The translations under genes were made by a program, and so were the position numbers. A stretch of DNA of 64,000 nucleotides, taken from assembly GCA_009103225.1 (NCBI GenBank), contig RHPI01000193.1, forward strand, positions 1 through 64,000. The letters are read 5' to 3'. The notes under the pieces are model-generated. The model was not told the origin of the DNA and ran no database searches. It worked only from the letters and a program-made list of their open reading frames with translations. Positions 80 through 22,805 of the stretch are shown here, piece after piece (the stretch's first letter is position 1; the number at the start of each line of letters is the position of its first letter). The stretch comes from Chlorokybus atmophyticus (Eukaryota; Plantae; Mesostigma and Chlorokybus algae).

Positions 80-80
80 T

Positions 81-792: not shown

Positions 793-1459
793 CAGTCAAG
801 GCCAAATTCTGTGATTTTCATGGCCGTTTTAGGCTTTATTTGTAAGGTACATGTTTTTAATGACTTGTGGCGGATATCGGCGAGTTATGAGTCTGCCGCG
901 GATATCGACCGGGGCCCCAAGACCAGTCCGGAAGGTGCCAGAAAACGGAGGGCCAGTCGAGAAGGGCTCGACCAGATTTCTGGAAGGGCCTGGCGCCAAG
1001 TAGTATAACTTGACCATATGAGCAGCAAATTAGGAGATCTTTGGTGCGTTAGAAAGGTCTAGAAGTGTACTACAAGATTCTGCGAGAATATCTTAGCTTC
1101 TAGTTCCGTCTAGCGCTAGAATCGTCTAGACAGTAGCATGTGCAGACTGGTAGGTATAAAAGTGACATTCTACAACTTGCAATACAACCTTTAGCTCCCT
1201 AGTTTCTTGTGTGCAAGCTTGGTGGTGGTTAGCAGGGGTTGCTAGCGTGTGCCCACCGGTGTGTGCTTGCTTGTGTGACGATCCAAGGCGCTACACAAGT
1301 CGGTATGTAGCTTCGAGCGCATGCGCGTTCGTACGCGAGTGGCGGGGCGCGTGTGTGTGCTTGGCAGAGGGGGCAAGGTTCCGGTGTGAATACCGTGTCT
1401 TGGTGAGAGGGTTATGGATTGGACCAACTCACAGGTGACAAGGCACGAGCACCGTCACA
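788..1459 (+). repeat. Chromovirus 3' LTR (672 bp, TGTAACA...GTCACA)
   Basis: Starts TG right after the PPT and ends CA; TATAAAA near 1155; near-identical inverted copy at 6750-7421 and diverged copy at 22143-22805; followed by TSD CCCTC (1460-1464). Confidence 0.93.
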
Positions 1460-4400
1460 CCCTCGCTCCAGGTTGTTCTGGGAGCTGATGAGGATCATCC
1501 ACCTCCTTCAACACCACCAGATCTCCAGACCCCTGGGGTACGTCATTGAAAATGTGCATTCAGAGGACGACAAGCGTCCGCACGTGGCCTCCAGCTACCG
1601 ACAAGTTTGCTCCATTCTGGGGCACCCACTCAAGGTGAACGCGGCACGACATGGCTCGCGCGCACATCGTGTACGTGCCAAATGGACAAACTTGGCCACC
1701 GTGGAGGAGCTCATTACCGCCGAATACACGCGCAGCGCTCGGCCGCGCAACCTGCTGGTCGACGACATCCTTGACCCCGGCCGCACAGCACAACCTGTCC
1801 TGCATCATAACCACAAGCACTTCTACCAGTGCAATCAGCCTGGTCAGCCCCGTCGCGCACTCCCCACATTGGTGTCCTACCCGGGCTCCTACGCATTTCG
1901 GAACGGTGGTGACGGGATGGTATTTGATGCAACCACCAACACGTTGGAAGAACCCAACGCACGCGAACGTGAATGCGCCATGGGCTTCTTCCCCAACAGC
2001 ATCACAGGTTCATCGCTGACGGACAATCAGCAATGCCAGCTGCTTGGTCGCGCCATGGACCAGAACAGCATGATATGGCTGCTGGAGCTGAGCTTTGCGT
2101 TGCAGGACCGCCACGTGTCCTTCGAGGATCTCGAACACTTGGCTGGGGGGTGGGCTGATCGCGTCAACACCAAGGCAGCTCACACAGCTTTCGAGGTGGT
2201 CCACATGGAGGAGCAAGCGGCAGTGACAGTGGAGGACATTCCTGTGGTTGCCAATGCGACCTCCTGGGACCATGCCATTAGCCCGTTGGCCACGGAAGAC
2301 ACTCGAGAGAAGCTGGAGGCTCTCCTTAATAAATGGGGGAGCCAATTCAGCTTCAATGTGAAGGAATTGGGTACATGTGCGGTGTACCAGATGGACATTG
2401 AGCTAGTGGACACTGAGCCGGTGTTCCGGCGACAATACAGGCTCTCCAAGTTGGAAAAAGATTTGGTGGAACAGAGATGCAAGGCGCTGCTAGATGCAGG
2501 CCTTATCGAAGAGTCCACATCGGACTTCGCAGCAGCAACCGTCATGCCCCTGAAGAAGGATTCAGCAGGCAACTGGACAGAGCGACGCATGTGTGGCGAC
2601 TATCGTCTCCTCAATAACAAGACCAAGCAAGACCGGTACCCCATGCCCACAGCAGAGGGTATTTTTGATGATGTGGGAGACTGCACAGTCTTCAGCATCC
2701 TGGACATGCGTCAGGGGTACAACCAGATCGCCATCAAGGACGAGGACAAGCACAAGACCTCCTTCTGGGGCAACCGACAGTTGTACCAATGGAAGGTAAT
2801 GCCGTTCGGGCTGAAGAACGCCCGCGCCAAGTTTCAACGCGTCATGGACAAAGCCTTGAAGGGGTTGGACTGCGCGCGGTGCTACATCGATGACATCTTC
2901 ATCTTCAGCCGCAGAAGCGAGGAGCATCTTCAGCACATCGAAGCGGTGCTGGAACGACTCAAGGGAGTGGGGATGACCGTACACCCCGACAAGTGTACCT
3001 TCTTCACCCACAAGGTGCCGTACTTAGGGCACATGATTGTGCCCCATGGTGTGTATGCGCAGCAGGCCAAAGTAGAGGCTCTGGCAGCTATCCCTGCCCC
3101 GACAGACCTCACGCGCCTGCGCGCTTTCTTGGGACTTGCCAACTATTATCGTCGATTCGTGAAGGACTTCGCGAAGATCGCAAGGCCTCTCAACGAGCTA
3201 CTGAAAAAGGAGGTGGAGTTCGCGTGGAAGGAGTCGCAACAGCAGGCCTTCGAGGAGCTGAAGAGCAGACTCACCAGCGCTCCCATCCTTCAACGTCCGG
3301 ACTACGCCAAGCCTTTCATCCTTCACACCGACTGGAGCAAGCTGGGGATGGGAGCGGTGCTGGTGCAGCACGATGAGAACAAGAAGGAGCGGGTGGTGTC
3401 ATACGCCAGCCGAAGCAACAACAGCGCCGAGGCCAACTACAGCAGCTACGAAGGGGAGTGCCTCGCTGCAGTGTGGGCCATCTCCTTCTTTCGACCTTTC
3501 CTCTTTGGTCGACAGTTCCAACTGATCACCGATCATCAGCCCCTCAAGTGGCTGATGACCAACCAACATCTAACAGGGAAAACTTGCTCGATGGGCCCTG
3601 CTGTTACAGGAATACGACTTCGAGATTGACCACCGCGCTGGCCTCACCAACCAAGACGCCGATGGCCTCAGTCGCAACCCCCACCTCAGCACCAACGACG
3701 CAACTGGAGCGCGGCATGAGCTCATCCCTGCAGCAACAGCTCCCACCATGGCAGCCATGTTTGCTGCTGCCGCGTTGCGCTCAGGGCGCAAGACCAACAC
3801 CACAACCTCAGCAGTGGTAGAGGAGATTCCTGCCCTTGAGTCTACCGACCCTGCGGCAATCACACCCTTGGGAGACGCCCACGCAGCCGACATTGACGTC
3901 GATGACACAAAGCTGGCGTCCACTGACACCGGGCAGGACATATGGCACGACAAGCCATCACTCTCCTTTCTTCAACGTGGCCATCCCCCCTCTGGCATGA
4001 GCGCTCGAGAGAAGGACCGGGTCAACCAATGCACCCGTCACTATCGATGGACAGGTGACAAGCTGTATCGCCGCTTCCACGACGAAGACAAGGAAGTGCC
4101 GACACCAGTCACGCGCGAGGACATCATCACTTCCCTCCACACTGAGCTTGGACACTTTGGTGTCAAGCGCACAGTCAGTCTAGTGAAAGCACAATATTGG
4201 TGGCATGGATTAACAAAACAGGTGCAAATGTTCGTCAGCCACTGCCAGCAGTGTGACATGGTGCGCGCCAGCCTCAACACGCGTAGCGCCACCTTGCACC
4301 CACTCCCCATCTCCGGTCTCTTTTACCGATGGGGACTCGACATCTTGGGGGACTTGGCACCCTCAGCACGTGGCAACCGTTACATCCTGGTCATGATTGA

Positions 4401-5400
4401 GCACTTCTTCAAATGGGTGGAGCTGGTGCCATTACCCGACAAGAGCAGCAGGGGGGTGTCTCAAGCCTTCCTCTCTCATGTTCTCAGCCGCTTTGGCAGC
4501 TGCGCCGAGGTCATCACCGACCAAGGTACTGAGTTCAGAGGGGAATTCGACACCCTCTTGGACAAATGTTACATCGACCACCGCCGTACCTCGCGTGATC
4601 ACCCTCAAGCCGACGGCCTCACCGAGCGGACGGTACAGACCATCAAGAAGGCGCTCCGCAAATACGTGTTGGAGTACAAGAAGGACACTTGGGATGACCA
4701 CCTCCCATGGGTGGTCCTTGGATATCGGTTGTCAAAACAGGCGGCTCTGCGGGAGTACCGCCCGTACTACCTGCTGTTTGGGCGACCACCATTGATCCCC
4801 TTCCGTGCGCAACAGGAGGTGGATCGCGTCGTGAACAACCTCGACGACCCTGACTGGATGCACCACGATATCACCACGCGCGCCGCACTTTTCGAGCGCA
4901 TCGTCCCCATGGCCTTCAACAATCTGCGCATCGCGCAGCATCGCGACACGCTGCGCTACGAGCGCGTACGCAGCGGCTTTTACAAGGAGCGCCAACGGCG
5001 ATTCCAAGCGGGGGACTTTGCCTATCGCATGGCAGCCACCAAAGACACGCTTGACACCTCCGTAGGCCGCACCGTCTACAAGGTACTCAAAGTGTACCCC
5101 ACAGGGGTGCTGGACCTCCTTGGTCAAAACGGAGAAAGGTTAAAGGACAACATGGTGAACTGTGCGCCATGTCACCTCCCTTACGTAGCCGGCTTCGGGC
5201 GTATCCAGCACCCTCGTCCTGCGCGCAGCACACGCTGTGAACACTGCGGCAGCGCCGGCGACGACGCACTCATGATGCTCTGCGATGGCTGCAACAAAGG
5301 CCTGCATTGCTACTGCCTGGAGCCACCTTTGGACACGATACCTATGGAAGAATATTGGTGCGACGACTGCCGTACCAACGGCCCTCCTCACTTGCGCTAG
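1460..5400 (+). mobile_element. Pol 3' part of DNMT-Gypsy copy I: C5-methyltransferase C-half, RT, RNase H, integrase, PHD finger (+1 frameshift near 3580)
   Basis: MTase motifs V-X: (ENP)RSRLFWE, YVIENV, AHRVRAKWTN, EEPNARERECAMGF, QLLGRAMD. RT: RMCGDYRLLN, MPFGLKNA, YIDD. RNase H: LHTDWS...ITDH. Integrase: HTELGH...C..C, WGLD, TDQG, LTER. PHD: CEHC...CDGC..GLHCYC...WCDDC. GGGAAAACTT versus GGGAAACTT in copy T explains the ORF split. Confidence 0.93.
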
Positions 5401-5444
5401 CAGCTGAGCTCTGGAGCCGGAACCTTCCCCAGAGCCCAGGGGGG

Positions 5445-6522
5445 GTGGCTTGTTGACTTTGTATGCTACGGCACAGCATGTTCTTAGGGAAAACACCGAC
5501 TCCATCTGCCCGTACTACCCAGCAGCAGCACCCCAGCTGCACGAAGCACTTGTCACCATGAGGGTGGAGGTCATCTTTTTGTTCTTGCTACGCGTCACCC
5601 AGGTGGCGCAGCAGCATGTCCAGCACAGTCTGGCTGTCCATGCAGCTGTCCGAGACAGCGTGACCCTCGACTCCCCTCGACCCGACAGCTGTCATGCCTA
5701 TCGCCCAAGCATGCCCGTCGTCATCGGGCATGCCTACAGCAAAGACCCTCGCCCGGCTTACCAGCATGGCAACCCGCGCTCGCCTCTGACCAGTAGCTAG
5801 GTCATGTCCCTAGAGTAGCTCGTGACCATAGCCTGCATAGGCACCGCGCGTAGCTGTTCAATTGTGAGTTCAGTTATAAGTCCGGTTCCATATCGAGTGG
5901 GCATTTCCTGTGGAAATAGCCTCGATATGACCGTTAGCTTATGTTCTGGACAGTCATGAGTTGACTTGTATAAGTAGGCACAGTGTTCACCGGATCAGCT
6001 AGTGACACTGTAAGCGTGAAAGCTAAGAGCTTGTGAAGCGACTTGAACTACGAGCACACCGTCCTGGTTCTCAAGAATCCCCTCACCGTGTGAGAGCCTG
6101 TGCATGTTCTTGTGCACTGCGCTTGTTCTTGCTGTGAGCTTTGTGTATTTGGTCGCGGTGTGCTTGTTGGCATCAGACAGGGCATAGCATCCACGTGTTG
6201 CTTGCTCATTCACCTCACTTAACAGTGTAATTCCTCTCCCACTCACGCAAAGAACTGTGTAAACAGCACTACCTATAGTAGTGGCTTGTTGACTCTAGAT
6301 GCTACGGCACAGCATGTTCTTAGGGAAAACACCGACTCCATCTGCCCGTACTACCCAGCAGCAGCACCCAGCTGCACGAAGCACTTGTCACAATGAGGGT
6401 GGAGGTCATCTTTCTGTTCTTGCTACGCGTCACCCAGGTGGCGCAGCAGCATGTCCAGCACAGTCTGGCTGTCCATGCAGCTGTCCGAGACAGCGTGACC
6501 CTCGACTCCCCTCGACCCGACA
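5445..6522 (+). repeat. 3' split direct repeat B1-A2-B2 of DNMT-Gypsy copy I
   Basis: B1 5445-5687, GC spacer, A2 5690-6295, B2 6281-6522. A2 matches A1 (12851-13456, minus). G-run PPT at 5439-5445 precedes B1. The element ends CCCGACA, then ATCT (TSD). Confidence 0.9.
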
Positions 6523-6749
6523 ATCTGATACACCGAGCACGTTTCTAATTCCTTCACGTTTAAGCTGAATTAGCTCCTCCATTTGTTGAGGAGAGCCTCC
6601 AGCTTCTCTCGAGTGTCTTCTGTGGCCAACGGGCCAATGGCATGGTCCCAGGAGGTGGCATTGGCGACCACGGCAATGTCCTCCACTGTCACTGCTGCTT
6701 GCTCCTCCATGTGGACCACCTCGAGGGCTGTGTGAGCTGCCTTGGTGTC
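6523..6749 (-). pseudogene. Fragment of the MTase-RT linker of DNMT-Gypsy copy T (left flank of the copy I insertion)
   Basis: Reverse complement aligns to about 2166-2392 and ends ...TATCAGAT; the sequence resumes at 13457 with AGATGGACATC. Confidence 0.88.
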
Positions 6750-7421
6750 TGTGACGGTGCTCGTGCCTTGTCACCTGTGAGTTGGTCCAATCCACAACCC
6801 TCTCACCAAGACACGGTATTCACACCGGAACCTTGCCCCCTCTGCCAAGCACACACACGCGCCCCGCCACTCGCGTACGCACGCGCATGCGCTCGAAGCT
6901 ACACACCGACTTGTGTAGCGCCTTGGATCGTCACACAAGCAAGCACACACCGGTGGGCACACGCTAGCAACCCCTGCTAACCACCACCAAGCTTGCACAC
7001 AAGAAACTAGGGAGCTAAAGGTTGTATTGCAAGTTGTGGAATGTCACTTTTATACCTACCAGTCTGCACATGCTACTGTCTAGACGATTCTAGCGCTAGA
7101 CGGAACTAGAAGCTAAGATATTCTCGCAGATTCTTGTAGTACACTTCTAGACCTTTCCAACGCACCAAAGATCTCCTAATTTGCTGCTCATATGGTCAAG
7201 TTATACTACTTGGCGCCAGGCCCTTCCAGAAATCTGGTCGAGCCCTTCTCGACTGGCCCTCCGTTTTCTGGCACCTTCCGGACTGGTCTTGGGGCCCCGG
7301 TCGATATCCGCGGCAGACTCATAACTCGCCGATATCCGCCACAAGTCATTAAAAACATGTACCTTACAAATAAGGCCTAAAACGGCCATGAAAATCACAG
7401 AATTTGGCCTTGACTGTTACA
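6750..7421 (-). repeat. Chromovirus LTR (hybrid, non-matching flanks)
   Basis: About 99% identical by eye to 788-1459 in inverted orientation; flanked by CCCTC on one side and GACAC on the other. Confidence 0.92.
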
Positions 7422-10179
7422 GAGGGTTTTCGAGGCCTTGTCCCTTGCCTGCCCTGGAGTGCCCTTGGCATTCCCATCCAGCTATTAACAGGTCGACATT
7501 GCGGAGGGACAGTAGGTGATCTTCAGTGATCAGCCGGACGTCCTGTGGCAATGCTTTGAGGCTGCCTTGCAACGCCGAGAGGGGTAGTTGACGTGGATAC
7601 CTGGTGTGCAGTTGGCGTAAGTGGTGCTTGAGGCCCGTTTGTGCGTGTGGGTCTGGGTCACAGTAATAGTATTTGGTAACCTTCACGCCCGTGTTAAGGA
7701 CCGCAGCAAGACCACTGCCAATGCCTCCAAACAGCTCCAACACTGTGATGCCCTGTTGTCTGCGAAAGGTGTGGAATTCCACCACTCCGGTGGCCACCAT
7801 ATGGTGGTCCTGCACCTTGACGTGGCTTCGGTAGTTGGGGAAGCGCGTGGTGATCAGTGGGTGGCTGAGCAAGATGTGTGCGTCCACCTGTGCGCGCCAG
7901 CGCCGTTCAGCTGGGTCTTGTAATGCTACTTCCACGGTGGCATCCTCCTGCTCCTCGTTGTACGAAATGGGAGAGGGGTCGCCGGTTTGACACGGGGTTG
8001 TGGCACCAGCAGCGACTTGCGTCCGAGCACCGTTGTATATGGCCATTACAGCCTTACGGGTGCGGGCGTGTCTGAGTGTGGCCATGGCAGCCATTTTGCG
8101 TTGGGCGCGCGTGCGCGAGACCAACTCGAGAGGCAGGAAACCCTGTACCTCTCCTTCATCCTCATCCCAATGTGGCCGAAACCACGCTCGTTGTGTCCAG
8201 CAGTCGAGGCCCATGCCCACAGGGAAGTTGAAATCCTGCCCAAGCAGAAAGTCGAAGGAGCCGGCATTGGTGACCACGCATTGCTGGACGATCTCGGTCG
8301 TGTAGGTTGGGTCCAGCCCTGTCAACCGAATGCAAAAGGCCTCCCTGGTGACTCCCATCACCTTATCCCGGCTACCTGTGGCAGTGTCCAACACGTACGG
8401 GCAAGGCACCAAGTCGAAACTGGTTATGCCTAGGGACCGCGCGAGGAAGCGCCCGATGATGGCACGCTGTGCTCCGCTGTCCAACATTACCCGCTTGGGT
8501 GCCAGACCGTTGATGGTAACGTGCTTGCCTTGGTTGGCCACAATGGCAGCGTTGGCGTCGATACGCAACCTCTTCATACGAGGTGTCTGTTCCTCTGACT
8601 CAGTTGCCTCAGCTGGAGATGCTGAGCGCATGGCAGCCAGAGCTCCTCTGCCTGCTGGATCCGAAGAACCCCCTCCTTGCCCTCTCCCTCTGCCGAACCG
8701 ACCTTGTCGAGGTGGTTGGTAGACACGGGGGGGCCTCGGTGCTGGAGGTTCCGGCGCCGGTTGTGGTGGCGGCGCAGGTGGATGACGCCTCTGCGAAGCT
8801 GGAATCATGCCCGCGGGCGTACCCAGTGGCTGTGGAGGGAACCCCGGCGGACCCGGTGTTTGTGGGCCTGCCTCGCGTTCAGCTTGCTCCGCGGCGTACG
8901 TCCATCGGACAGCATGAGCTGCTTCTCTGAGTAACGTCCCTTCCCACGTGGCCGTGGGCTCGGTGTCCGTGTCGGTCCAATGATGATATTGAGGCATGGG
9001 CTGCAGGTATACGGCGCGTAGTAGCTGTCGCCGCATGTCGTGAGTAATGGTGGGGACTCGTAGGATCCCTGCCATGTAGGCATCCCACCTTCCTTGTACC
9101 ACTCCCACATCGAGCACAGTCATGGCGCGAGCACGTAGGGTGCGCTGGAGGTCAGTCTGCTGTGCATGTAGCTCATGAGCAATGGCGAAGCGCCGCCGTT
9201 GCCGTGCGGCTTCCACCCCTGGCAGCCGAAGCATTGCCTCTTGCACTCCCTCCAGCGTGTCCGGGGCTGTGGTGGCAGCCTCGTCGTATGCTTGTCGCAG
9301 CGAACGAACGAATGCCCCCAACCATGATGCTCGGTTGCCAAAGGCAAACAGGGGGACAGCAGGGTGATTGGCAACGAGCCTTGTCACGAGACGAGCTCGA
9401 GCGGCGCTGCCCTCTTGCATCCCCATCATCTGTCTTAATGTGTTGCCCTCAGGCCTATGCAACATGACTGCTTGCCGGATGAGTGCGGTACGGAGTTGTT
9501 GCTCCCCCACCATACCAGCTCCTCCTCGTTGTGTGGTGTCCCCTTGCGGGGTGAGGTACCCTCGCCCTGCATCGCGTTGATCCTCAGGCATGTCTTCGAC
9601 CAAAGGAGGCAGCAGCGGGGCGATTACTCCCCTCAATTGTTGCGCCAACGCCCTCGCTTGGTCTGCAACAGTTGCGTGTCCCGGCTGCTCGATGGCGATC
9701 GCCGTGGAGTGTGCTGTGGTCGGCGCCGTGGAGGCGCTGGCAACATGTGCTGGCGCTATGGTTGGTACGATAACGGCGTGTGCTGCTTCGTACGCTTGTC
9801 GGCGTGCGTCCACTTGGGCAGCTTGGTCCATGCAATACCGATGGGCCTGTTCGAGTGCAGAGAAACGCTCTTGACGACTGCCTGGAGTGAGCCCCCGGAG
9901 AGCGAGATCAATGCCCAGCGCGATGTCAGACATCGTGACCACGAGGTCTTGGAGTTTGTGTCGCTGGAGGCCGAGTGGGTCCAGTGGCGAAGGCTCGAAG
10001 TCGATCTGTTCAGCGGGCATGGGCTGTCGCGATTGACTGGGTGCGCCCTGCAACCGTGCGTGTAATGCCAGGAATAACTGAATGGCCAGTTCCAACACCG
10101 CAGGTCGGCGATAGGTGACCCCGAACAGACGATCCCTCATCTCTGGTGCAGTGCCGGCGAGGATTTCATCCTCCAGCTG
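7422..10179 (-). mobile_element. Pol 5' part of DNMT-Gypsy copy I: unknown helical/Pro-rich region, aspartic protease, C5-methyltransferase N-half
   Basis: Protease RVMLDSGA...DFLLGQDF. MTase motif I VLELFGGIGSG, II YYYCDPDP, III PQDVRLI, IV VDLLIAGWECQGHSRAG. Cut at GLENP by the chromovirus LTR (TSD CCCTC); continues in frame at 1460. Confidence 0.92.
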
Positions 10180-12639
10180 CTATTGTGTGGGCTCCGGCAG
10201 CGTGTGGTATTCTGGCGGTGGTAGGGGCAAGATGCGATCATCGCGTGCCACGCGCGTGGTGCGTTGCCCCCCTGGTCCGTACGCAATAGTGGTGGGCTCC
10301 ACGTTGCGTAGAATCGACGCCCAGGCGCGTTCTGCTTGCGGCCCGCGTGGCACTTGCTGTGTGACGTCCAATGCTGGTGGCGGTGCCGTCCGGCCCTCAG
10401 GAAGTGGTGCGGTGGTTATGGCCGCACTACTTGAGGCGATGGTGGTGGCACCTGCCGCAGTCGTTGTCACTGAGGTGGCGGCTGTGAGGGTGGCAGCAGT
10501 TGCGGTTGATGTGGTCGCTCCGATGGAGGCAGGAGTGGTGGATTCACCACTTACGAACCCAACGACCATGGTTGCTGCGGCGTGGGTGCTCTCCATCACC
10601 GGGAACAGCGTGGTGCCAAGAGTGCTGACACCTGCTGTCGTGGTCGGTGTGGACGCCGACGGTGTCGTCAACGGCGTCGTCCCAGCGGTGGTTGTGGCTG
10701 CCGAGGCAGCACCGCATGTGGCGTCCGACGATGCCGCTGTTGACGACGCGCCAGCTTCCCTGCGCGCCCGTCTGAATGGTTGTACGCGTGACAGCGTGGG
10801 AGTGTCCCTATCCCGTTTTGGTGCCATCAATGCCCACCTAGCAGCATAGCAGGCTTGATAGTCCTGCTCCTTGTTTTCCTCCAGCTGTGCCACGCGCGCC
10901 ATCAGGGCTGCCACTTGGTCGATAGCCGGTGGATTGGTTGGTGCCTTTACAGCAGCAGCTCCAGCGCGAGGACGCCCCTCCAGTCCTTTGTGCTGTGGAG
11001 GGCGGTTTTTCCCTCTATAGCCAGCTTCTTCCTTGCGGGCGCCAGCGTTGTTGTTGTTGTTGGGGTTGTGGCCACCAGAGTTGTTGCCGTTGTTGCGACC
11101 ACCAGCGTTGTTGCTGTTGTTGTGGCCGCCAGCGTGGTTGCTGTTGTTGTAGCCCCCGTTGTTGTTGTGGTGGTTGTGGCCGCGGTAGCCAACAGCGTTG
11201 TTGCTGCTGTTGTAGCCAATAGGGGGCCGCAGCTCAGGGAACTTGAGCCAGCATACTGTCTCCAAGTGCCCCGTCTTGTGGCAGTGGTCGCACACAAGGT
11301 TGCCGTAATCTTCGGTGCACTCCTTCTGGTAGTGGCCATGTCGACCACACCGGTGGCGCAGCACTAAAGCCACAAGGGCAGCATGAGCTGACCGTTTATC
11401 CTTGTAATGGATGCCTTGCGACTCCCGGCTGCGGTCCCGCCGAAGAGGCTCTGCACTTGTGCCTGCCATAGGCCGTGAGGCACTGCGGTTGGTGTTCAGC
11501 ACCGCTTTGTCATACACTGCGCGCTTATGGATGGCTTGTGCAGTCTCGAAAGCTTCCTTGAGGGTGTAGCCAAGGGGCCTGCTGTAGTTCAGAGTCAGGC
11601 GTGTCGACTCGCTCAGAGCCGCATCCAACTCATTGACGTATATCACTGCAGCAGCCTCCTCACTGACAATCCTGTAGTCAGTGTCCTTCAGCAGACCTTC
11701 CAGTCTGGAGTACAAGCGGAGGGGATCCTCATTGGGCTTGCGTCGGAAGCGTCTCAGCTCCTCAACCTTGCTGGTGGTCTGAGGAGGGAAGGTGCGGCGC
11801 AGGGCAGCGTACAGGTCCTTGAGTGGCGAATCAGAGATGGCAGCACCTACGGAGATGGCTGGTGCGCGCAGTGCTACTGACCCGAGGGTGAAGGTACCTC
11901 CTGCACGAGAGCCAGGTGTTGCCGGAGGTAGAGGAGTACCCCACTCTGCGGCTGCCGCTTGCTGTGCAGCTCTTTGTTCCTCAATGATGACGGCAGAACG
12001 GTCAAGGATGCGGACTCGACGTGTGGCCTCCTTGGACTCAACTTCTGCAGGGGTCAAGTTGACAAGTACCAACTCCGGTTCCTCCTCCTCTGCCTGCTTG
12101 AGAGCTGCAGCTATGGACAAGCCTGTTACTGCAACTGAAGTGGCAGGTGGAACGACACCTGTTGGACGGTGCAGCGATGCAGATGCTATGGTGCTGGTAA
12201 GCTCGCCATAGCCGTCCACTCGATGCAGTTCAGCAACGGACTTCCGGACATCGTGTGTTTCATAATCAAGATACTGAGCAGCAATGTGGAAAGGGATCTC
12301 ATCTGACAAGTCTTTGTTCTTCAGAGCTTGCTGCCGCATCTTGGAGTGGAACTTGATGATGAACTCATCCAGCGAGGTGGTGCCGGCACGTCCGGAGAAG
12401 CGTAGGGATGTGGTTGAACTGGAAGACTCCATCTCGTTGTCGTCGCTGTCCGAGGATAGTGGAGAAGCTTGATGACGAGGAGTAGAGTGGAGCGGGGTGA
12501 AGCTGGAGATGGAGCGCGAGCCTCTGCTGCTGCGGTCGATGCTCCCGTCACTGGTCCGCTCGTAGGTGAGGTTGGTGGTTGAGCTCCAACTGCTGAGGTC
12601 ACCCTCGTCTATTGGGGAGAACGGGGTGGGCCTGCTCAT
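10180..12639 (-). CDS. Gag-like ORF (819 aa) of DNMT-Gypsy copy I
   Basis: FSGRAGTTSLDEFI and LRRFRRKPNEDPLRLYSRLE capsid-like segments; two CCHC knuckles (HRCGRHGHYQKEC degenerate, CDHCHKTGHLETVC); Asn/Gly-rich and Thr/Ala-rich tails; ends at a TAG in frame with pol. Confidence 0.85.
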   Translation of the reverse strand: MSRPTPFSPIDEGDLSSWSSTTNLTYERTSDGSIDRSSRGSRSISSFTPLHSTPRHQASPLSSDSDDNEMESSSSTTSLRFSGRAGTTSLDEFIIKFHSKMRQQALKNKDLSDEIPFHIAAQYLDYETHDVRKSVAELHRVDGYGELTSTIASASLHRPTGVVPPATSVAVTGLSIAAALKQAEEEEPELVLVNLTPAEVESKEATRRVRILDRSAVIIEEQRAAQQAAAAEWGTPLPPATPGSRAGGTFTLGSVALRAPAISVGAAISDSPLKDLYAALRRTFPPQTTSKVEELRRFRRKPNEDPLRLYSRLEGLLKDTDYRIVSEEAAAVIYVNELDAALSESTRLTLNYSRPLGYTLKEAFETAQAIHKRAVYDKAVLNTNRSASRPMAGTSAEPLRRDRSRESQGIHYKDKRSAHAALVALVLRHRCGRHGHYQKECTEDYGNLVCDHCHKTGHLETVCWLKFPELRPPIGYNSSNNAVGYRGHNHHNNNGGYNNSNHAGGHNNSNNAGGRNNGNNSGGHNPNNNNNAGARKEEAGYRGKNRPPQHKGLEGRPRAGAAAVKAPTNPPAIDQVAALMARVAQLEENKEQDYQACYAARWALMAPKRDRDTPTLSRVQPFRRARREAGASSTAASSDATCGAASAATTTAGTTPLTTPSASTPTTTAGVSTLGTTLFPVMESTHAAATMVVGFVSGESTTPASIGATTSTATAATLTAATSVTTTAAGATTIASSSAAITTAPLPEGRTAPPPALDVTQQVPRGPQAERAWASILRNVEPTTIAYGPGGQRTTRVARDDRILPLPPPEYHTLPEPTQ

Positions 12640-12839
12640 ACAGCTGGTGCGATGGTGAAAGTGGAATGAAGGGTAGAGTGTTTGTGTTCTACAATGGGAT
12701 CTCCAGCGCTGCTATCACCCAACACACTAGCGCTTGTGCGCGCTATGCGATGACGGTGACAACACTGCACTGTGATGTGTACAACTACAGATTGCGATGC
12801 TGATGTACAGCTTGCAACTACACTCACTTTAGCAAAGAG

Positions 12840-12850
12840 GGTGACACTGT
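12840..12850 (-). promoter_or_regulatory. Putative self-priming primer-binding site ACAGTGTCACC
   Basis: Immediately 3' of A1 and exactly complementary to GGTGACACTGT at 13145-13135, which lies 32 nt downstream of the TATA box. Confidence 0.7.
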
Positions 12851-13456
12851 AAGTCAACAAGCCACTACTATATGTAGTGCTGTTTATACAGTTCTTTGCG
12901 TGAGTGGGAGAGGAATTACACTGTTAAGTGAGGTGAATGAGCAAGCAACATGTGGATGCTATGCCCTGACTGATGCCAACAAGCACACCGCGACCAAGTA
13001 CACAAAGCTCACAGCAAGAACAAGCGCAGTGCACAAAAACATGCACATGCTCTCACACGGTGAGGGGATTCTTGGGAACCAGGACGGTGTGTTCGTAGTT
13101 CAAGTCGCTTCACAAGCTCTTAGCTTTCTCACTTACAGTGTCACCAGCTGATCCGGTGAACACTGTGCCTACTTATACAAGTCAACTCATGACTGTCCAG
13201 AACATAAGCTAACGGTCATATCGAGGCTATTTCCACAGGAAATGCCCACTCGATATAGAACCGGACTTATAACTGAACTCACAATTGAACAGCTACGCGC
13301 GGTGCCTATGCAGGCTATGGTCACGAGCTAATCTAGGGACATGACCTAGCTACTGGTCAGAGGCGAGCGCGGGTTGCCATGCTGGTAAGCCGGGCGAGGG
13401 TCTTTGCTGTAGGCATGCCCGATGACGACGGGCATGCTTGGGCGATAGGCATGACA
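12851..13456 (-). repeat. 5' repeat A1 of DNMT-Gypsy copy I (606 bp) with promoter
   Basis: Begins TGTCATGCC next to TSD AGAT; matches A2; TATAAG at 13177-13172 (minus); no B repeat at this end. Confidence 0.9.
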
Positions 13457-16400
13457 AGATGGACATCGAGCTGGTAGACACTGAGCCGGTGTTCCGGCGA
13501 CAATACAGGCTCTCCAAGTTGAAAGAGGACCTGGTGGAACAAAGATGTAAGGCGCTGCTTGATGCAGGCCTTATCGAAGAGTCCACATCGGACTTCGGAG
13601 CAGCAACTGTCATGCCACTGAAGAAGGATTCAGCAGGCAACTGGACAGAACGACGCATGTGTGGCGACTATCGCCCCCTCAACAACAAGACCAAGCAAGA
13701 CAGGTACCCCATGCCCACAGCGGAGGGTATCTTTGATGATGTGGGAGACTGCACAGTCTTCAGCATCCTGGACCTGCGTCAAGGGTACAACCAAATCGCC
13801 ATCAAGGACGAGGACAAGCACAAGACCTCCTTCTGGGGCAACCGACAGTTGTACCAATGGAAGGTAATGCCGTTCGGGCTGAAGAACGCCCCCGCCAAGT
13901 TTCAACGCGTCATAGACAAGGCCTTGAAGGGGCTGGACTGCGCACGGTGCTACATCGATGACGTCCTCATCTTCAGCCCCAGCGACGAGGAGCATCTTCA
14001 GCACATCGAAGCGGTGCTGGAACGACTCAAGGGAGTGGGGATGACCGTACACCCCGACAAGTGTACCTTCTTCACCCACAAGGTGCCGTACTTAGGGCAC
14101 ATGATTGTGCCCCATGGTGTGTATGTGCAGCAAGCAAAAGTAGAGGCTCTGGCAGCTATCCCTGCCCCGACAGACCTCACACGCCTGCGCGCTTTCTTGG
14201 GACTTGCCAACTACTATCGCCGGTTCGTGAAGGACTTCGCGAAGATCGCCAGGCCCCTCAATGAGCTACTGAAGAAGGAGGTGGAGTTCGGATGGAAGGA
14301 GCCGCAACAGCAGGCCTTCGAGGAGCTGAAGAGCAGACTCACCAGCGCTCCCATCCTTCAACGTCCGGACTACGCCAAGCCTTTCATCCTTCACACCGAG
14401 TGGAGCAAGCTGGGGATGGGAGCGGTGCTGGTGCAGCACGATGAGAACAAGAAGGAGCGGGTGGTGTCATACGCCAGCCGAAGCAACAACAGCGCCGAGG
14501 CCAACTACAGCAGCTACGAAGGGGAATGCCTCGCTGCAGTGTGGGCCATCTCCTTCTTCCGACCTTTCCTCTTTGGTCGGCAGTTCCAACTGATCACCGA
14601 TCATCAGCCCCTCAAGTGGCTAATGACCAACCAACATCTGACAGGGAAACTTGCTCGATGGGCCCTGCTGTTGCAGGAATACAACTTCGAGATTGACCAC
14701 CGCGCTGGCCTCACCAACCAAGACGCCGATGGCCTCAGTCGCAACCCTCACCTCAGCACCAACGATGCAACTGGAGCCCGGCATGAGCTCGTCCCTGCAG
14801 CAACAGCCCCCACCATGGCAGCCATGTTCGCTGCTGCCGCGTTGCGCTCAGAGCGCAAGACCAACACCACGGCCTCAGCAATAGCAGAGGAAATTCCTGC
14901 CCTTGAGCCGACAGACCCTGCTACGACCCCACCCTTGGGAGACGTCCACGCAGCCGACATTGACGTCGATAACACAGAGCTGGCGTCCACTGACACCAGG
15001 CAGGACATATGGCAGGACAAGCCATCATTCTCCTTTCTTCAAAGTGGCCAGCTTCTCTCCGGCATGAGCGCTCGAGAGAAGGACCGAGTCAACCAACGCA
15101 CCCGTCACTATCGATGGGCAGGTGACAAGCTGTATCGCCGCTTCCACGACGAAGACAAGGAAGTGCCGACCCCGGTCACGCGCGAGGGCATCATCACTTC
15201 CCTCCACACTGAGCTTGGACACTTCGGTGTCAAGCGTACAGTCAGCCTAATGAGGGCACAATATTGGTGGTATGGGTTAACAAAACAGGTGCAGGGATTC
15301 GTCAGCCACTGCCAACAGTGTGACATGGTGCCCGCCAGCCTCAACACGCGTAGCGCCACCTTGCACCCACTCCCCATCTCCGGTCTCTTTTACCGATGGG
15401 GACTCGACATATTGGGGGACTTGGCACCCTCAGCGCGTGGCAACCGGTACATCCTGGTCATGATCGAGCACTTCTCCAAATGGGTGGAGCTGGTACCAAT
15501 ACCCGACAAGAGCAGCAGGGGGGTGTTCCAAGCCTTCCTCTCTCACGTTCTCAGCCGATTTGGCAGTTGCGCCGAGGTCATCACTGACCAAGGTACTGAG
15601 TTCAGAGGGGAATTCGACACCCTCTTGGACAAATGTTACATCGACCACCGCCGTACCTTGCGTGATCACCCTCAAGCCGACGGCTTCGCCGAGCGTACAG
15701 TACAGACCATAAAGAAGGCACTCCGCAAGTACGTGTTGGAGTACGAGAACACTTGGGATGATCACCTCCCGTGGGTGGCCCTCGGATATTGATTGTCAAA
15801 GCAGGCGGCTCTGCGGGAGTACAGCCCGTACTACCTGCTGTTCGGGCGATCACCATTGCTCCCCTTCCGTGCGCAGCAGTAGGTGGATCGCGTCGGGAAC
15901 AACCTCGACGACCCTGACTTGATGCACCACGACATCACGCGCGCCGCGCTGTTCGAGCGCACCGTTTCCATGGCCTTCAACAACCTGCGTATCGCGCAGC
16001 ATCGCGACATGCTGCGCTACGAGCGCGTACGCAGCGGCTTCTACAAGGAGCGCCACCGGCGGTTCCAAGCGGGGGACTTTGCCTATCGCATGGCAGCCAC
16101 CAAAGACACGCTTGACACCTCCGTAGGCCGCACCGTCTACAAGGTACTCAAAGTGTACCCCACAGGGGTGCTGGACCTCTTTGGTCAAAACGGAGAGAGG
16201 TTAAAGGACAACATGGTGAACTGTGCGCCATGTCACCTTCCTTATGTAGCCGGCTTCGGGCGTATCCAGCACCCTCGTTTCGCGCGCAGCACACGCTGTG
16301 AACGCTGCGGCAGCGCCGGCGACGACGCACTCATGATGCTCTGCGATGGCTGCAACAAGGGCCTGCATTGCTACTGCCTGGAGCCACCTCTGAACGCGAT

Positions 16401-16461
16401 ACCTATGGAGGAGTATTGGTGCGACGATTGCCGTACCAACGGCCCTCCTCACTTGCGCTAG
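13457..16461 (+). pseudogene. Pol 3' part (RT-RNase H-integrase-PHD) of DNMT-Gypsy copy T, with in-frame stops
   Basis: Highly similar to 2389-5400; stops near 15790 (CGG>TGA) and 15880 (GAG>TAG); PHD retained. Confidence 0.92.
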
Positions 16462-16505
16462 CAGCTGAGCTCTGAAGCTGGAACCTCCCCCAAAGCTCAG
16501 GGGGG

Positions 16506-17586
16506 GTGGCTTGTTGACTTTGTGTGCTACAGCACAGCATGTACACTAGGGAGGACACCGACTCCATCTGCCCGCACTACTCAGCAGCAGCAGACCAGCT
16601 GCACAGAGCACTTGTTACCATGAGGGTTGGGGTCATCTTTTGCTTTTTGCTGCACGTTGCACAGGTGGCGCAGCAGCATGTCCAGCACGGCATGGCTGTC
16701 CATGCAGCTGTCCGAGACAGCGTGACCCTCGACTCCCCTCGACCCGACAGCTGTCATGCCTATCGCCCAAGCATGCCAGTCGTCATCGGGCATGCCTACA
16801 GCAAGACCCTCGCCCGGCTTACCAGCATGGCGACCCGCGCGCGTCTCTGACCAGTAGCTAGGTCATGTCTCTGGAGTAGCTCATGACCATAGCCTACATG
16901 GGCACCGCGCGTAGCTGTTCAGTTGTGAGTTCAGTTGTAAGTTGGGTTCTATATCGAGTGAGTGTGGAAATAGCCTCAATATGACCGTTAGCTTATGTTC
17001 TGGACAGTCATGAGTTGACTTGTATAAGTAGGCACAGTGTTCACCGGATCAGCTGGTGACACTGTAAGTGAGAAAGCTAAGAGCTTGTGAAGCAACTTGA
17101 ACTACGAAACACGCCGTCCTGGTTCTCAAGAATCCCCTCACCGTGTGAGAGCCTGTGCATGTTCTTGTGCACTGTGCTTGTCTTTGCTGTGAGTTTTGTG
17201 TACTTGGTTGCGGTGTGCTCGTTGGCATCAATCAAGGCATAGCATCCACGTGTTGCTTGCTCATTCACCTCACTTAACAGTGTAATTTCTCTTCCACTCA
17301 TGCAAAGAACTGTGTAAACAGCACTACCTATAGTAGTGGCTTGTTGACTTTGTGTGCTACAGCACAGCATGTACACTAGGGAGGACACCGACTCCATCTG
17401 CCCGCACTACTCAGCAGCTCTGTGCAGCAGACCAGCTGCACAGAGCACTTGTCACCATGAGGGTTGGGGTCATCTTTTGCTTTTTGCTGCACGTTGCACA
17501 GGTGGCGCAGCAGCATGTCCAGCACGGCATGGCTGTCCATGCAGCTGTCCGAGACAGCGTGACCCTCGACTCCCCTCGACCCGACA
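16506..17586 (+). repeat. 3' split direct repeat B1-A2-B2 of DNMT-Gypsy copy T
   Basis: B1 16506-16749, GC, A2 16752-17350, B2 17336-17586; palindrome GACAGCTGTC at 16746-16755; ends CCCGACA. Confidence 0.9.
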
Positions 17587-18273
17587 TGACGCTCTCCTCC
17601 TTACTGTACTTACTGTGTTGTAGTACACACAGGCAACAAGGCACTACGATAGGTAGTGCTGTATATACAGTTCTTTGCATGAGTGGATGATGTGTTACAC
17701 TGTCAAGTGAGGTGAATGAACAAGCAACTCAGAGATGCTATGTTCTAACTGATACAGCAAACACACCACCGCCAAGTTTAAAGCAGTGACAAGCATAAGA
17801 GCATACACTGTATCTCACGCAGTAAGGCAAGTCTTGGCAAACGGGACGGTGTGCTTCCAGTTCAAGTCGCTTCACAAGCTCTTAAAGTTAGAGTCTCTAA
17901 TTTGAGTACTCACTCACAATGTCACCAGCAAGTCTAGTGACATGACTTCCTACTTATACATGTCAAATCATGACTGTGCAGTGCCACGCGGGCACTATGC
18001 CAACGGTCACATTGAGGTCGTATGCTACTACGAAAATCCCCTAAGACTCCATATAGCACATGAGCTGATAACAGATTCCCATTGATCAGCTATGCGCGGT
18101 TCCTACGGAGAGGTCTATAGAGTAGCCCTAGCTACCTGCTACATGAAGTACGAAATAGCTGGCTGTAAGTAGTAGGCTGGGGCGCGCGCGGTCTTCATGT
18201 TGGTAGCCCAGGCTTAGGACTGGATGTAGGCATGCTCGAGGAGGACTGGCATGCGAGGGTATTGGGCATGACA
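17587..18273 (-). repeat. Diverged solo A(+partial B) repeat of a related subfamily
   Basis: Minus strand starts TGTCATGCCC at 18273 and keeps TATAAG and GGTGACATTGTGAGT. A runs straight into B-like sequence, which is interrupted by the copy T end. It abuts chromovirus gag at 18274. Confidence 0.72.
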
Positions 18274-21200
18274 ATGCGCAAGTGTTACGTGTGCGGATTG
18301 ACAGAACATTTGGCGTTCAATTGCTCCAAGCGGCGCACGCAAACGTCTGCATCAGCTGGCAACACATATCGCGCACGACGCATCAACGCAATGGAGGAAG
18401 ATAGCGTGGAGGCTCAGGGAAACGACTCCCCCCAGTAGGTAAGGAGGCTATTGCTGGCAATGAGGGGGAGCCTCACGCACAAATGAAAATTGTGACATCG
18501 CAACCAAGGAGGAAAATGGAGGTGGCTATGAATACGCCCATGGTGGTAAGTTATGCAAGCGAATAGGCAACAAAGTACGTTGGGCTTCTAGCACGCATTT
18601 GCGATGACCGAGGACAATGGAGGGAGTGCAAGCTTATGGTTGATAGTGGTGCAAACAGCAACTTCATGAGTGAGGAGGTTGCACGGCGCTACGGTTGGCT
18701 TTCACGATTACGAGGAGGAGAAGTGAAACTCGCTGATGGGGAACCACCCTCTGGAGGTACCGGTGCTGCGTTTTTAACCAAGGAGTTGTGTGTTCACGTG
18801 GGAAAGTTGAAGGAGAATATGCGGTTTTGCTGCATCACCCTACGGAATGGGTTTGATGTAATTTGAGACTACCGTGGCTGTGGCAACATAACCCATTTAT
18901 CAATTGGAGGAAGCGTGTGCTCACCATCAAGGGGAACGATTAAGAGTCCATTCAAGGTCTACGCGCGTGCTCTATCGAAGTGGAAGACCACTCTTGCTAG
19001 GAAAGCAAGAAGGGCTTTGTCATAGTTGCATCGGACGTCGCTAAGGCAAGTATGCGCACGTGTGATGAGCACCTGCAAGGGGATACAAGCACTGGAAAGG
19101 CACGGCACGTGCAATCAGGTGGGATTAGCATTGCTCAAGTTTTCTATGTGCAATTGAGGAGGCTGCTATCCCCCCGAAAAGTGAAGGCTGCATGGTTGTG
19201 CGTAGTGCGTCAGAGCACGAAGTCAGCACCGAAGATGAGTGACTGCACTGAGATAGCCACGATGGACCCCGAGGTGTGCAAACTTGTTCAGGATTACCAA
19301 AATATCAAGGTGAACGGACTTCCAGCTGGTCTGCCACCCTCACGGAGCGTTGATCACCGTGTGGAGTTGATTGAGGGCGTGCACAAGCCACCCTCACAGG
19401 CCTGTATATAAGTTGTCACCTCTGAAGTTGGGAGAGGCCGAGAAGCAGATAGCGAATTTGTAAGGGTAGGTTACATCTAGCCAAGTAAGTCACCTTATGG
19501 TGCACCAATACTGTTCGTGCGAAAGAAGAACGGGAGCCGTATGTGCATTGATTACCGAGCGCTCTACACCATTACAAAGAACAACTGCTTTCCGCTACCG
19601 CATATTGACGACTTGCTAGAGCAGCTACAAGGTGCGCAGTACTTTACCATACTTGATCTTGCTGGAGGGTATCATTGGATCCGCATCGCACCTGAGGACA
19701 GCATTCCACACGCGCTATGTACAGTATAAGTGGTTAGTGATGTCGTTTGGGCTTACATACGCGCAAGCGACATTTCTGACGTTGACGAGCAGCGTTTTTG
19801 CTGACGTGCTGGGTAAGGGAGTCCTCGTGTACCTCAACGACATTCTAGTGTACTCGAAGACGAGCATGTGAGTTTTCTACGGCGCGGGTTGCAGCGTTTA
19901 CGCGAGCACAAGTTGTACGCTCAGCTACAGAAGTGCAAGTTTTTGCTACGCGAGGTGGAGTACCTGGGCCGCATTGTGTCACACGAAGGGATCAAGCCGG
20001 ACCCCAACAAAGTGCAAGTGGTGCACGAATGGTCTGCCCCGACCAACGTGAAGGAGGTAATGTCGTTCTGTGGCCTTGCGGGGTATTATCGCAAGTTTAT
20101 CATGGGATTTTCGCGCATTCCGGCCCCTTTGACCACCCTATTCAAGAAAGGGAAGTCTTGGAGTTGGTCTCCAAAGGAAGAGCATGCATTTGTTGCGTCG
20201 CAGAAGGCGTTGGTAAAGGCACCCGTCTTGGCTCACCCCGACATGGACAAACCCTTCATTTTGGCTTGTGACGCATCCGACACAGCCGGGACAGCTGTGT
20301 TACGGCAAGACCAAGGCATGGGTCTTCAACCTATAGCGTTCTTTAGTAAGGATCAGAGTGGAGTGGAGCAGAGTTGAACTACACTGTGCACGAGAAGGAG
20401 CTATTGGCGCAAGTGATGGCGCTGCGACAATGGCGATAATTTCTTGAGGGCAAAAGGTTTGTGCTGGAGACGGACCATTCCCCATTGAGGTACTTACAGA
20501 CACAACCACATCTGAGCCGGAGACAAGCGCGGTGGTTGGAGTTCTTTTTTAACTTTTTGATTTTGAGATCAAGTACAAGCCCGGTACGTGTTATATTGTG
20601 GCCGACGCGCTAAGCTGGTTGAATGCGATTGAAGCACTCGCCCAAGTGCAACCAGAGTGGGCCAACCAGATCCGACAAGTGCTTTGCAAAGACATAGAAG
20701 GTAGGAGAGTGTTGCGGAACATAGAGAGCACAGCAACGGACACAAGTGGACATTGGACAAAGCAAGACGACCTACTATAGCATCATGACCGCTTGTACAT
20801 CCCCAATGTTGCACATATGCGTTCATCTTTTGAAAGGAGCTCATGACGTACCCATTGCTGGCCACCAAGGAGTGGAGAGGATATTGGCAAGCTTGTAACA
20901 ACGCTTTTACGGGCGGGAGATGCATCGTGATGTACGCGACTATATGGCGTTGTGCGACGCATGTTGAAGGGTGAAAGCAAGCAACCAAAAGCCAGGTGGG
21001 TTATTACACCCTCTTCCCGTGCCATTGTCCAAGTGGGAGCAAGTTACTATGGACTTTATTACGGGGCTGCCTAAGGCAACAGAAGGGTACGACACAATAC
21101 TCGAGTTTGTAGACAAAACCAGCAAAATGGTACGCTTGGCACCGTGTTGTGAGTCTTGCACGGCACTAAAGGCAGCAAGCTTGCTTATGAAGCAAGTGTT

Positions 21201-22805
21201 TCGTTCCCACGGACTACCACGAAGCATTGTGAGCGATCGTGATCCCCGCTTCACAAATAAGGTTTAGGAGGCGCTGCATAGTGCACTGGGTACTACCTTA
21301 AAGTTTAGCACGGCTTTCCACCCGAAAATTGATGGCCAAACTGAGCGAGCCAACCGTGTGATTGAAGATATTGCGCAGCTGCGCTGCTACGTGAATGCAC
21401 GGCAAGACAATTGAGCGGGATTGCTGGAAGTGGTGGAATTTGCCATCAACAACCATACTAATGCAAGCACGGGTGTCACCCCCTTTCTCACGAACTACGG
21501 CCAACCACCCGCTGACACCGCTAACGGCGTGGACACGCGACGAAGTGACGTTGATGTGGAAGCAGCAAGCGATTTTCTTACAACGTGTGCGGACATCAGT
21601 AAGACAGCGAGAGAGGCGTTATTGGTGGCACAAAGTAGGCAAAAACAGTACGCAGACGCGCATCGCCAACATGTCACATTTCGAGAAGGCGACATGGTAT
21701 TGCTTTCTGTGAGGAACTTACAGGTGCGTGCTGAAGTTCACAAATCAAGTGCGTGCTGGCTTGGGCCATTTCAAGTCATCAAAGTGGTTTCAAACGTGGC
21801 GTACAAGTTGCAACTGCATGACTCCATGCACATCCACCCTGTCTTTCACATATCCCTTCGGAAGTCATATCGAGGAGAGCCACCATTGCGTCCACCGCCT
21901 GAGTTAGCTACAAGAGTAAATATGGAATATGGAATACGAAGTGGAGGACATATTGGGTGAGATAACGGTGCACGACGTGCGCAAACATTTGGTGAAATGG
22001 AACGGCTACCGGATGCATGAAGCCACTTGGGAACTGGAGGAGCACTTGGCAAATGCACAACATATGATGCAACAATATTTGCAACAACGACCAGAGAATT
22101 CTCAAGAGCTTTGAGGACGAAGCTCACGTAGGGGGGGAGGAGTGTAATAGTCGAGGCCAAGTTTTATGATTTCAGGACCTTATTTGGCCCATATATCGAT
22201 CACCACGTTTTCATGACTTGTGGCATCGGCGAGTTATGAGTCTGCCGTAAATATCGACCGGGGCCCCAGGACCAGTTTGGAAGGTGCCAGCAAACGGAGG
22301 GCCAGTCGAGAACGGCTCGACCAGATCTCTGGAAGGGCCTGGCGCCAAGTAGTATAACTTGACCATATGAGCACCTAATCAGGAGATCTTTGGTGCGTAA
22401 AGGTCTAGAAGTATACTACAAGGTTCCATAATAACATCTTAGCATCTGATTTTGTGTAGCACGGGAATCGTCTAGGCAGTAGCATGTGCATACTAGTAGG
22501 TATAAAAGCGACATTCTACAATGTGCAATACAATCTTTAGCTCCCTAGCTTCTTGTGTGCAAGCTTGGTGGTGGTTAGCTGGGGTTGCTAGCGTGTGTCC
22601 ACTGGTGTGTGCTTGCTTGTGTGACGATCCAAGGCGCTACACAAGTTGGTGTGTAGCTTCGAGGGCATGCGCGTGCGTACGCGAGTGGCGGAGCGCGCGT
22701 GTGTGCTTGGCAGAGGGGGCAAGGTTCCGGTGTGAATACCGTGTCTTAGTGAGAGGGTTGATGATTGGACCAACTCACAGGTGACAAGGCACGAGCACCG
22801 TCACA
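18274..22805 (+). mobile_element. Degenerate chromovirus (gag knuckle, protease, RT, RNase H, integrase, chromodomain, PPT, 3' LTR 22143-22805)
   Basis: CYVCGLTEHLAFNC; MVDSGANSNF; MCIDYRAL, YLNDILVYS; LACDASD; WEQVTMDFITGLP; EYEVEDILG...VKWNGY; PPT 22130-22142; many stops and frameshifts. Confidence 0.9.

Follow-up and report, generated by a model that had tools for sequence, protein, structure and literature searches.

The retrotransposon family analysed here, a Gypsy family encoding a cytosine methyltransferase (DNMT), lies at the start of a 64,000-nucleotide stretch of Chlorokybus atmophyticus DNA (assembly GCA_009103225.1, contig RHPI01000193.1, positions 1 to 64,000; hereafter the window). 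It belongs with KnitGypsy-Dnmt3 of Klebsormidium nitens (de Mendoza et al. 2018, PMC5890265), which likewise has a Gypsy polyprotein with a cytosine methyltransferase between protease (PR) and reverse transcriptase (RT), and DIRS-like repeats. The legend of Fig. 4c in that paper describes the repeats of Klebsormidium Gypsy-Dnmt3 as having a DIRS-type arrangement. The layout itself is thus not new; an initial annotation of the present DNA had taken it to be undescribed for Gypsy elements, and it has been in print since 2018. The retrieved passages of the 2018 paper offer no mechanism and make no mention of a palindrome, a target site duplication (TSD), a primer site or a joint between repeats. 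K. nitens proteins are among the best matches to the integrase-PHD region of the window family (45-48% identity), and one K. nitens locus reads B1-GACAGCTGTC-A2-B2, where A and B denote the two repeat segments. Unlike KnitGypsy-Dnmt3, the window family resides in another genome and is a distant member, with under 50% integrase identity.

Three other systems bear on the comparison. The PAT/Ngaro/TOC1-type elements (DIRS order) share the A1...B1-A2-B2 layout, in which the internal B-A unit equals the joined termini; in contrast to the window family, which has a DDE integrase, TG...CA ends and 4-bp TSDs, they encode a tyrosine recombinase. The integrases of HIV-1 (PMC1905944) and foamy virus (PMC1180852) are described, in the passages cited, as cleaving a palindromic junction between two long terminal repeats (LTRs), so that the chemistry proposed below has a precedent. 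Both there and here, att ends are abutted as a palindrome, and an internal cut gives, or would give, processed ends. In the retroviruses this is a side reaction on a by-product, whereas here the palindrome is encoded in U3 and would be the obligatory substrate. As an integration route in retroviruses, LTR-LTR junction cleavage is a disputed side path. Finally, the predicted primer site resembles that of the fission yeast Gypsy elements Tf1 and Tf2 in being complementary not to a tRNA but to the beginning of the element's own transcript, over 15 nt here and over 10-17 nt in relatives; Tf1, unlike the present family, has ordinary identical LTRs.

The family, designated D, shows in the sequences compared no B at the 5' end, a polypurine tract that abuts B1, a putative self-priming site that abuts the end of A1, and the invariant palindrome GACAGCTGTC. 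The account that we favor, with somewhat better than even confidence, combines a nested and partly flipped locus, this family layout, and integration of joined cDNA ends by way of an internal palindrome.

Repeat layout and gene content of the family

The window was dissected by self-comparison and Pfam domain searches. The region contains a young element, N, an older copy, O, and LTRs of a chromovirus, C:

788-1459, plus strand: C LTR (TG..CA), preceded by C's own polypurine tract; right flank CCCTC, half of C's 5-bp TSD
1460-5400, plus strand: 3' half of N, with the rest of the DNMT, RT, RNase H (RH), integrase (INT; H2C2 + rve) and PHD finger (Pfam, tblastn)
2389-2392, plus strand: AGAT in N's own pol (...ACC-AGAT-GGAC...), the uninterrupted paralogue of N's entry site in O
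5431-5444, plus strand: polypurine tract of N (G-run), immediately 5' of B1
5445-5687, plus strand: B1 of N, 97.5% identical to B2
5684-5693: palindrome GACA-GC-TGTC at the B1/A2 junction of N
5690-6294, plus strand: A2 of N, 97.7% identical over 605 nt to A1, of which it is the reverse complement
6281-6522, plus strand: B2 of N, with the element's right end GACA at 6522
6523-6748, minus strand: O pol fragment of 226 nt ending in AGAT (plus strand ATCT), 90% identical to 2167-2392 in inverted orientation; N's left target flank, now flipped
6750-7421, minus strand: second C LTR, inverted relative to the first and 99% identical to 788-1459; N-side flank CCCTC, the other half of C's TSD
7422-10140, minus strand: N open reading frame (ORF) with aspartyl protease and the start of the DNMT, motifs I and IV (Pfam)
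10180-12639, minus strand: gag-like ORF of N, with two CCHC zinc knuckles
12840-12854, minus strand: primer-binding-like word, 15 nt complementary to 13131-13145 within A1 (candidate Tf1-type self-priming signal)
12852-13456, minus strand: A1 of N, with the element's left end TGTC at 13456
13457-16461, plus strand: 3' half of O from AGAT (N's right target flank), with RT, RNase H, integrase and PHD (Pfam; 93% identical to 2386-6522)
16506-17586, plus strand: B1-GC-A2-B2 of O (copy T of the initial annotation), with B1 at 16506-16749, palindrome at 16746-16755, A2 at 16752-17350 and B2 at 17336-17586

Self-comparison places the repeats and both occurrences of GACAGCTGTC (5684-5693 and 16746-16755) where the initial annotation had them, and the G-run stands, as it had said, directly upstream of B1. 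Its remark that B1 and B2 are alike within a copy and different between copies is also borne out (97.5% in N and 96.8% in O vs about 87% between the two). It had further described a 15-nt word at the end of A1, at the start of B1 and once at A2/B2. The word is present on the plus strand at 5445, 16506 and 17336 and on the minus strand at 12851, and the occurrence at 6281 departs from it by one mismatch. It is made up of 11 nt from the end of U5 and 4 nt from the beginning of the primer site, and it also stands 3' of the polypurine tract. The earlier observations are thus partly confirmed. What did not survive is the first copy, "copy I", as one colinear, intact insertion: its gag/PR half lies on the minus strand, and its B-A-B block (5445-6522) lies on the plus strand, continuous with RT-RH-INT-PHD at 1460-5400. 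This copy is split and inverted, with the chromovirus LTR at 6750-7421 inside it and a fragment of the older copy at 6523-6748, both of which had been missed.

The genes of N are those of Gypsy (Metaviridae) elements, namely a zinc-knuckle gag and PR-RT-RNase H-integrase (H2C2 + rve), the protease carrying a DSG motif. The termini are TGTC...GACA, of the TG...CA type, and the TSD is 4 bp, within the 4-5 bp range of such elements (AGAT in the window, now inverted). The two ends are not equal LTRs: the 5' end has only A and the 3' end has B-GC-A-B, both in N and in seven full-length relatives, and the 3' block is also present in O. The integrase ORF is intact, and its H2C2 and DDE-core residues are conserved across relatives. 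Between protease and RT, the DNMT matches PF00145 with E=3.4e-4 and 20.6 bits, just below the 22-bit cut-off, with motifs I and IV visible; two relatives (L004, L011) carry PF00145 at the same position. The methyltransferase is identified here at the level of a PF00145 cytosine methyltransferase domain. In N it is split by the chromovirus LTR into 7422-7560 (minus strand; motif I LELFGGIGSG, motif IV-like GWECQG) and 1460-2392, and the downstream part by itself has no Pfam match. The gag ORF has zero homologues in a large protein database. Searches for a tyrosine recombinase (PF00589) were negative, with a threshold of E<=10 for the gag ORF, the upstream part of the protease ORF and the two flanks of the DNMT region, and of E<=0.1 for the remainder of pol; the 11.1 kb of N leave no coding space unaccounted for. 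These profile searches agree with the earlier description of a DDE-integrase Gypsy element lacking a tyrosine recombinase. The element is Gypsy by genes and integration footprint; only the repeat layout is common to it and the tyrosine-recombinase elements.

Relatives of the integrase-PHD protein at 40-50% identity occur in K. nitens, Calypogeia fissa, Volvox africanus, Closterium and many metagenomes. A short B pair bracketing A on the 3' side of the integrase, a G-run before B1 and GACAGCTGTC exactly at the B1/A2 boundary are found in K. nitens, Volvox africanus and loci L004/L005, whereas L010 and L011 show only the palindrome. In L006-L008 both the B pair and the palindrome are missing, and L005 and L003 lack an A1 within 10 kb upstream. 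The Calypogeia locus (L002) was set aside as too nested for interpretation, and L009 as too decayed. About 30 of 80 metagenome loci have the same block, with the palindrome intact in the youngest copies and decayed by transitions in older ones. In the seven full-length relatives A1 lies about 9 kb upstream, none has an upstream B, and three have perfect 4-bp TSDs (AAGG, ACAA, TTTA). The GC spacer is invariant in every undecayed copy examined, including those of K. nitens, Volvox and both window copies. Conservation among relatives whose integrases are only 40-50% identical supports the earlier view of the B/A junction as both att ends placed head to head, and the relatives' TSDs together with the N site agree with an integrated unit running from TGTC (A1) to GACA (B2) between 4-bp duplications.

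Two further observations concern these relatives. In older metagenome copies (L024, L029, L030, L036, L037, L044, L060, L069, L074, L079) the palindrome core CAGCTG decays by transitions only, to CAATTG, CAACTG or CAGTTG, as would be expected if CAG/CTG sites were methylated. In L011 (positions 1-15084) units of 7.9 kb, each containing one palindrome, are arranged head to tail as body-[B-GC-A]-body-[B-GC-A]. A "c" suffix in the name of this contig is possibly a flag for circularity; the 66 substitutions and 9 gaps between its two laps (about 1%) point to a genomic tandem array and not to one circle read twice.

Reconstruction of the nested and flipped locus

Reading the minus strand left of 6523 and joining it to the sequence right of 13456 rebuilds a single D pol site, ...TATC-AGAT-GGAC.... 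This site matches N's uninterrupted 2389-2392, which indicates that one D element inserted at AGAT into another, duplicating 4 bp. Both 13457-17586 and 6523-6748 are 7-10% diverged from N. By these identities A1, 1460-6522 and 7422-13456 are assigned to N, and 13457-17586 with 6523-6748 to the older host copy O. Comparison within the window thus shows the region to be, as best reconstructed, a nest of the D family at a chromosome end, in which N (about 11.1 kb) was inserted in inverted orientation at AGAT in the pol of O. The order of N would be A1, self-priming site, gag, PR-DNMT-RT-RH-INT-PHD, polypurine tract and B1-GC-A2-B2.

The same comparison shows that chromovirus LTRs apparently entered after N, one in the DNMT region of N and one in O. 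The 5-bp TSD of C, CCCTC, is divided between 7422-7426 (reverse strand) and 1460-1464. The 5.3 kb between the two inverted C LTRs (1460-6748) now appear flipped, either by LTR recombination or by wrong orientation in the assembly. As a result of the flip, the halves of N face opposite ways and the TSD reads AGAT/ATCT. The initial annotation was right that the TSD is 4 bp long and adjoins the TGTC/GACA ends; AGAT at 13457-13460 and ATCT at 6523-6526 are reverse complements and not a direct duplication, and an inverted "TSD" at this locus is to be read as a flipped segment. Unflipping 1460-6748 in silico gives O with a complete inverted N at AGAT and a direct 4-bp TSD, N itself carrying a solo C LTR with its TSD. 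The second C then lies in O, 226 nt upstream of AGAT, with GACAC at 6745-6749 as its likely 5-bp target. The flip reading requires two C insertions.

Other data agree with this order of events. A short-read contig from a public run has the DNMT site uninterrupted (a loose end at 1459), and another runs from A into the primer site (a loose end at 6294). Divergence follows the nesting, being 1.0% for C, 2.3-2.5% for N and 3.2% for O. The alternative of a non-homologous break falling precisely at a C LTR edge was rejected; recombination or mis-orientation across two inverted C LTRs accounts for both edges. It is very improbable that N was split by autointegration of its own cDNA with inversion, the product being captured later in the genome. 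The signature of such an intramolecular event is present, in that N has its two ends attached to one and the same 4-bp D pol site, with the duplication inverted; however, both flanks belong to a copy 7-10% diverged from N, and the flipped segment is bounded exactly by the inverted chromovirus LTRs and yields on unflipping a clean nested insertion with a direct TSD.

Proposed joining of ends, self-priming and route of integration

A second 15-nt word, the primer-binding-like one right after A1 (12840-12854), is complementary to A positions 312-326. Equivalent complements in mid-A are found in relatives, with lengths of 16 nt (L011), 17 (L067), 15 (L038), 13 (L060), 11 (L084 and L058) and 10 (L057), and the primer-site-like words differ in sequence between four lineages. 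Complementarity maintained with lineage-specific sequences supports Tf1-like self-priming, with the transcript probably starting in mid-A. A tRNA primer site was dropped as a reading of the 15-nt word shared by A1 and B1, which is unconserved in relatives; the self-complement of 15 nt accounts for the site. Since the polypurine tract and the primer site bracket B-GC-A, the repeat made by reverse transcription would be permuted relative to the integrated ends; and since B-GC-A would be copied to both ends, the integrated ends TGTC and GACA would lie inside U3, abutted with a GC spacer. This bracketing and the conservation of the palindrome agree with the permuted integrated form suggested earlier.

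In the window the A2-B2 joint is the 15-nt word of the A1 end and B1 start, used once. In relatives it consists of U5, 1-6 nt of the primer site and B, or of a 2-nt microhomology, and is flush or imprecise. The B2 of L038 lacks 5 nt found in its own B1 and has an extra G, and L079 has 17 extra nt at the joint. An alignment of 17 copies shows indels concentrated exactly at the A2-B2 joint, with almost none in about 20 nt on either side. The joint therefore behaves as an end-to-end junction remade in every cycle and not as copied sequence. The 15-nt overlap is peculiar to the family in this window, where it is possibly a device for a precise joint; as a general closing device it lacks support, given the flush or imprecise joints of the full-length relatives.

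The initial annotation had called for alternative permutations to be sought among other copies. In about 14 distinct relatives the element terminates with a single B bordered by flanking DNA, and in four or five of them a 5' A is present as well, giving A-body-B (A-body-B or single-B loci L026, L048, L016, L081, L014, L015, L020, L022, L028, L033, L056, L059 and L080); two A-body-B copies have perfect TSDs, CCAA and TACA. Such copies may be direct products of cutting both palindromes of linear DNA or may reflect later deletions between B1 and B2. The other permutation, A-B-A at the 5' end, was found in none of the 11 relatives with an informative 5' end (seven full-length A...B-A-B and four A...B). 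Of the two forms sought, A...B thus exists and A-B-A...B is absent from these loci.

In the proposed mechanism, reverse transcription would yield a linear [B-GC-A]-body-[B-GC-A] molecule, in which the integrase recognition ends are abutted as a palindrome in U3, away from the DNA termini. Template switching or end joining would then connect the right terminus (U5 and a few primer-site nt) with a left terminus, where B begins. The A2-to-B2 joint would thus be remade in each cycle, guided in this window's family by the 15-nt word. The integrase would cleave after each CA of a palindrome, so that each CA-OH end is recessed behind a 2-nt overhang, as in retroviral ends after 3' processing. The inserted stretch would extend from the first palindrome to the one past the joint, the outermost palindromes being used. 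Cutting of both palindromes in unjoined linear DNA would give the A-body-B copies, as dead ends. In evolutionary terms, a green-lineage Gypsy clade (Klebsormidium, Volvox, a liverwort and this alga) would have moved its integrase recognition ends into U3 as the invariant GACAGCTGTC, so that integration could follow only after joining of the cDNA ends, via internal cleavage of the LTR-LTR type; we regard this proposition as evenly balanced.

The initial annotation offered a different route, in which the 15-nt redundancy closes the linear cDNA into a two-repeat circle, which is then cut by the integrase at one palindrome and inserted in permuted form. The 15-nt word is real and lies exactly at the A1 end, the B1 start and the A2/B2 joint, the palindrome is conserved, and the integrated length equals the body plus two repeats, all as that route would have it. 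Relatives with the same layout, however, lack the redundancy and have joints that are flush or show microhomology or extra nt. Moreover, if a symmetric two-repeat circle were opened at random, A-B-A...B and A...B-A-B would be expected equally often, and the full-length copies number 0 vs 7, with A...B at four further 5'-end loci. This count favors an asymmetric route, although a circular intermediate with biased cutting may take its place. In circle-junction DDE transposition of the IS3/IS30 kind a transposase cuts abutted ends in a circular intermediate; the head-to-tail array of L011, being genomic, is no such circle. The earlier interpretation is partly supported as a whole, and the symmetric circle in particular appears unlikely. 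Integration in the DIRS manner, in which a trans-acting tyrosine recombinase or host recombination would do the work and the DDE integrase would be irrelevant to the layout, is hardly credible: A1...B1-A2-B2 is indeed the hallmark of PAT/Ngaro/TOC-type tyrosine-recombinase elements, but the element has no recombinase ORF, its integrase ORF is intact with conserved H2C2 and DDE-core residues, and TG...CA ends with perfect 4-bp TSDs (in N and at least five relatives) are the footprint of staggered DDE strand transfer. A similarly minute likelihood attaches to an ordinary element with A-B LTRs at both ends, from which misassembly or secondary rearrangement would have produced the B-A-B block and the A-only 5' end. 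The region is subtelomeric and rich in repeats, there are gaps in the window, and the orientation of 1460-6748 may be the assembler's choice. Yet two window copies differing by 7-13% carry the same block, and the layout recurs in dozens of metagenome contigs as well as in K. nitens and Volvox. B1 is in all cases adjoined by the polypurine tract and A1 by the primer site, one contig from a public run has A followed by the primer site, and the arrangement is reported in the figure legend of PMC5890265; this explanation is close to refuted.

Several points weigh against integration through joined ends and an internal palindrome. All of its steps are read from integrated copies, and the middle palindrome would have to stay uncut, for which the scheme gives no explanation. 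Deletion between B1 and B2 could equally yield the A-body-B copies, and some of the variation at the joint could have been inherited within subfamilies. A small sample, 11 loci, stands behind the absence of A-B-A...B, and the relatives were drawn mostly from two metagenome lineages. At the locus itself, short-read contigs over 1431-7430 are fragmented and cannot decide the junctions 6522/6523 and 6749/6750, and one public run has no contig across 6431-6630.

The comparative signals (palindrome, TSDs, self-priming, an imprecise joint, A...B copies and no A-B-A...B) turn the 2018 remark into a testable mechanism. If true, integration through joined ends would be a natural case of a retroviral-type integrase obliged to act on an internal junction of joined ends. 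It would bear on the old question of whether two-LTR junctions serve as integration substrates, and it would mean that retroelements with a DDE integrase and those with a tyrosine recombinase have converged. In annotation, such elements will be mis-called by LTR finders that look for two equal LTRs.

Chromosome end and neighboring repeats

The remaining features of the region are the following:

1-83: telomere repeat (CCCTAA)n at the window start
82-792, plus strand: 3' end of C pol, with the integrase SH3-like domain and chromodomain (Pfam PF24626, PF00385), truncated by the telomere
17590-17981, minus strand: diverged A-like remnant adjoining the 3' end of O, 76-84% identical to A

The inverted A-like remnant abuts the right end of O, and O itself may sit inside a still older copy. 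At the window start, (CCCTAA)n runs directly into the chromovirus integrase, which suggests a chromosome end healed within a retrotransposon. In mid-window (25275-25401) an inward-pointing (TTAGGG)n block comes right after a single undetermined base and could represent a scaffold join or an interstitial telomere. The chromovirus C has 672-nt LTRs and a 5-bp TSD, and its contig depth in public runs is very high. Other C copies have the LTR followed by an initiator-tRNA-like primer site, and a third copy at 19457-22805 is 80-88% diverged. Two features unrelated to D are a tandem duplication of 153 nt (97%) at 51889-52194 and, at 39432-41899, a pair of 225-nt direct repeats (95%) separated by 2.2 kb.

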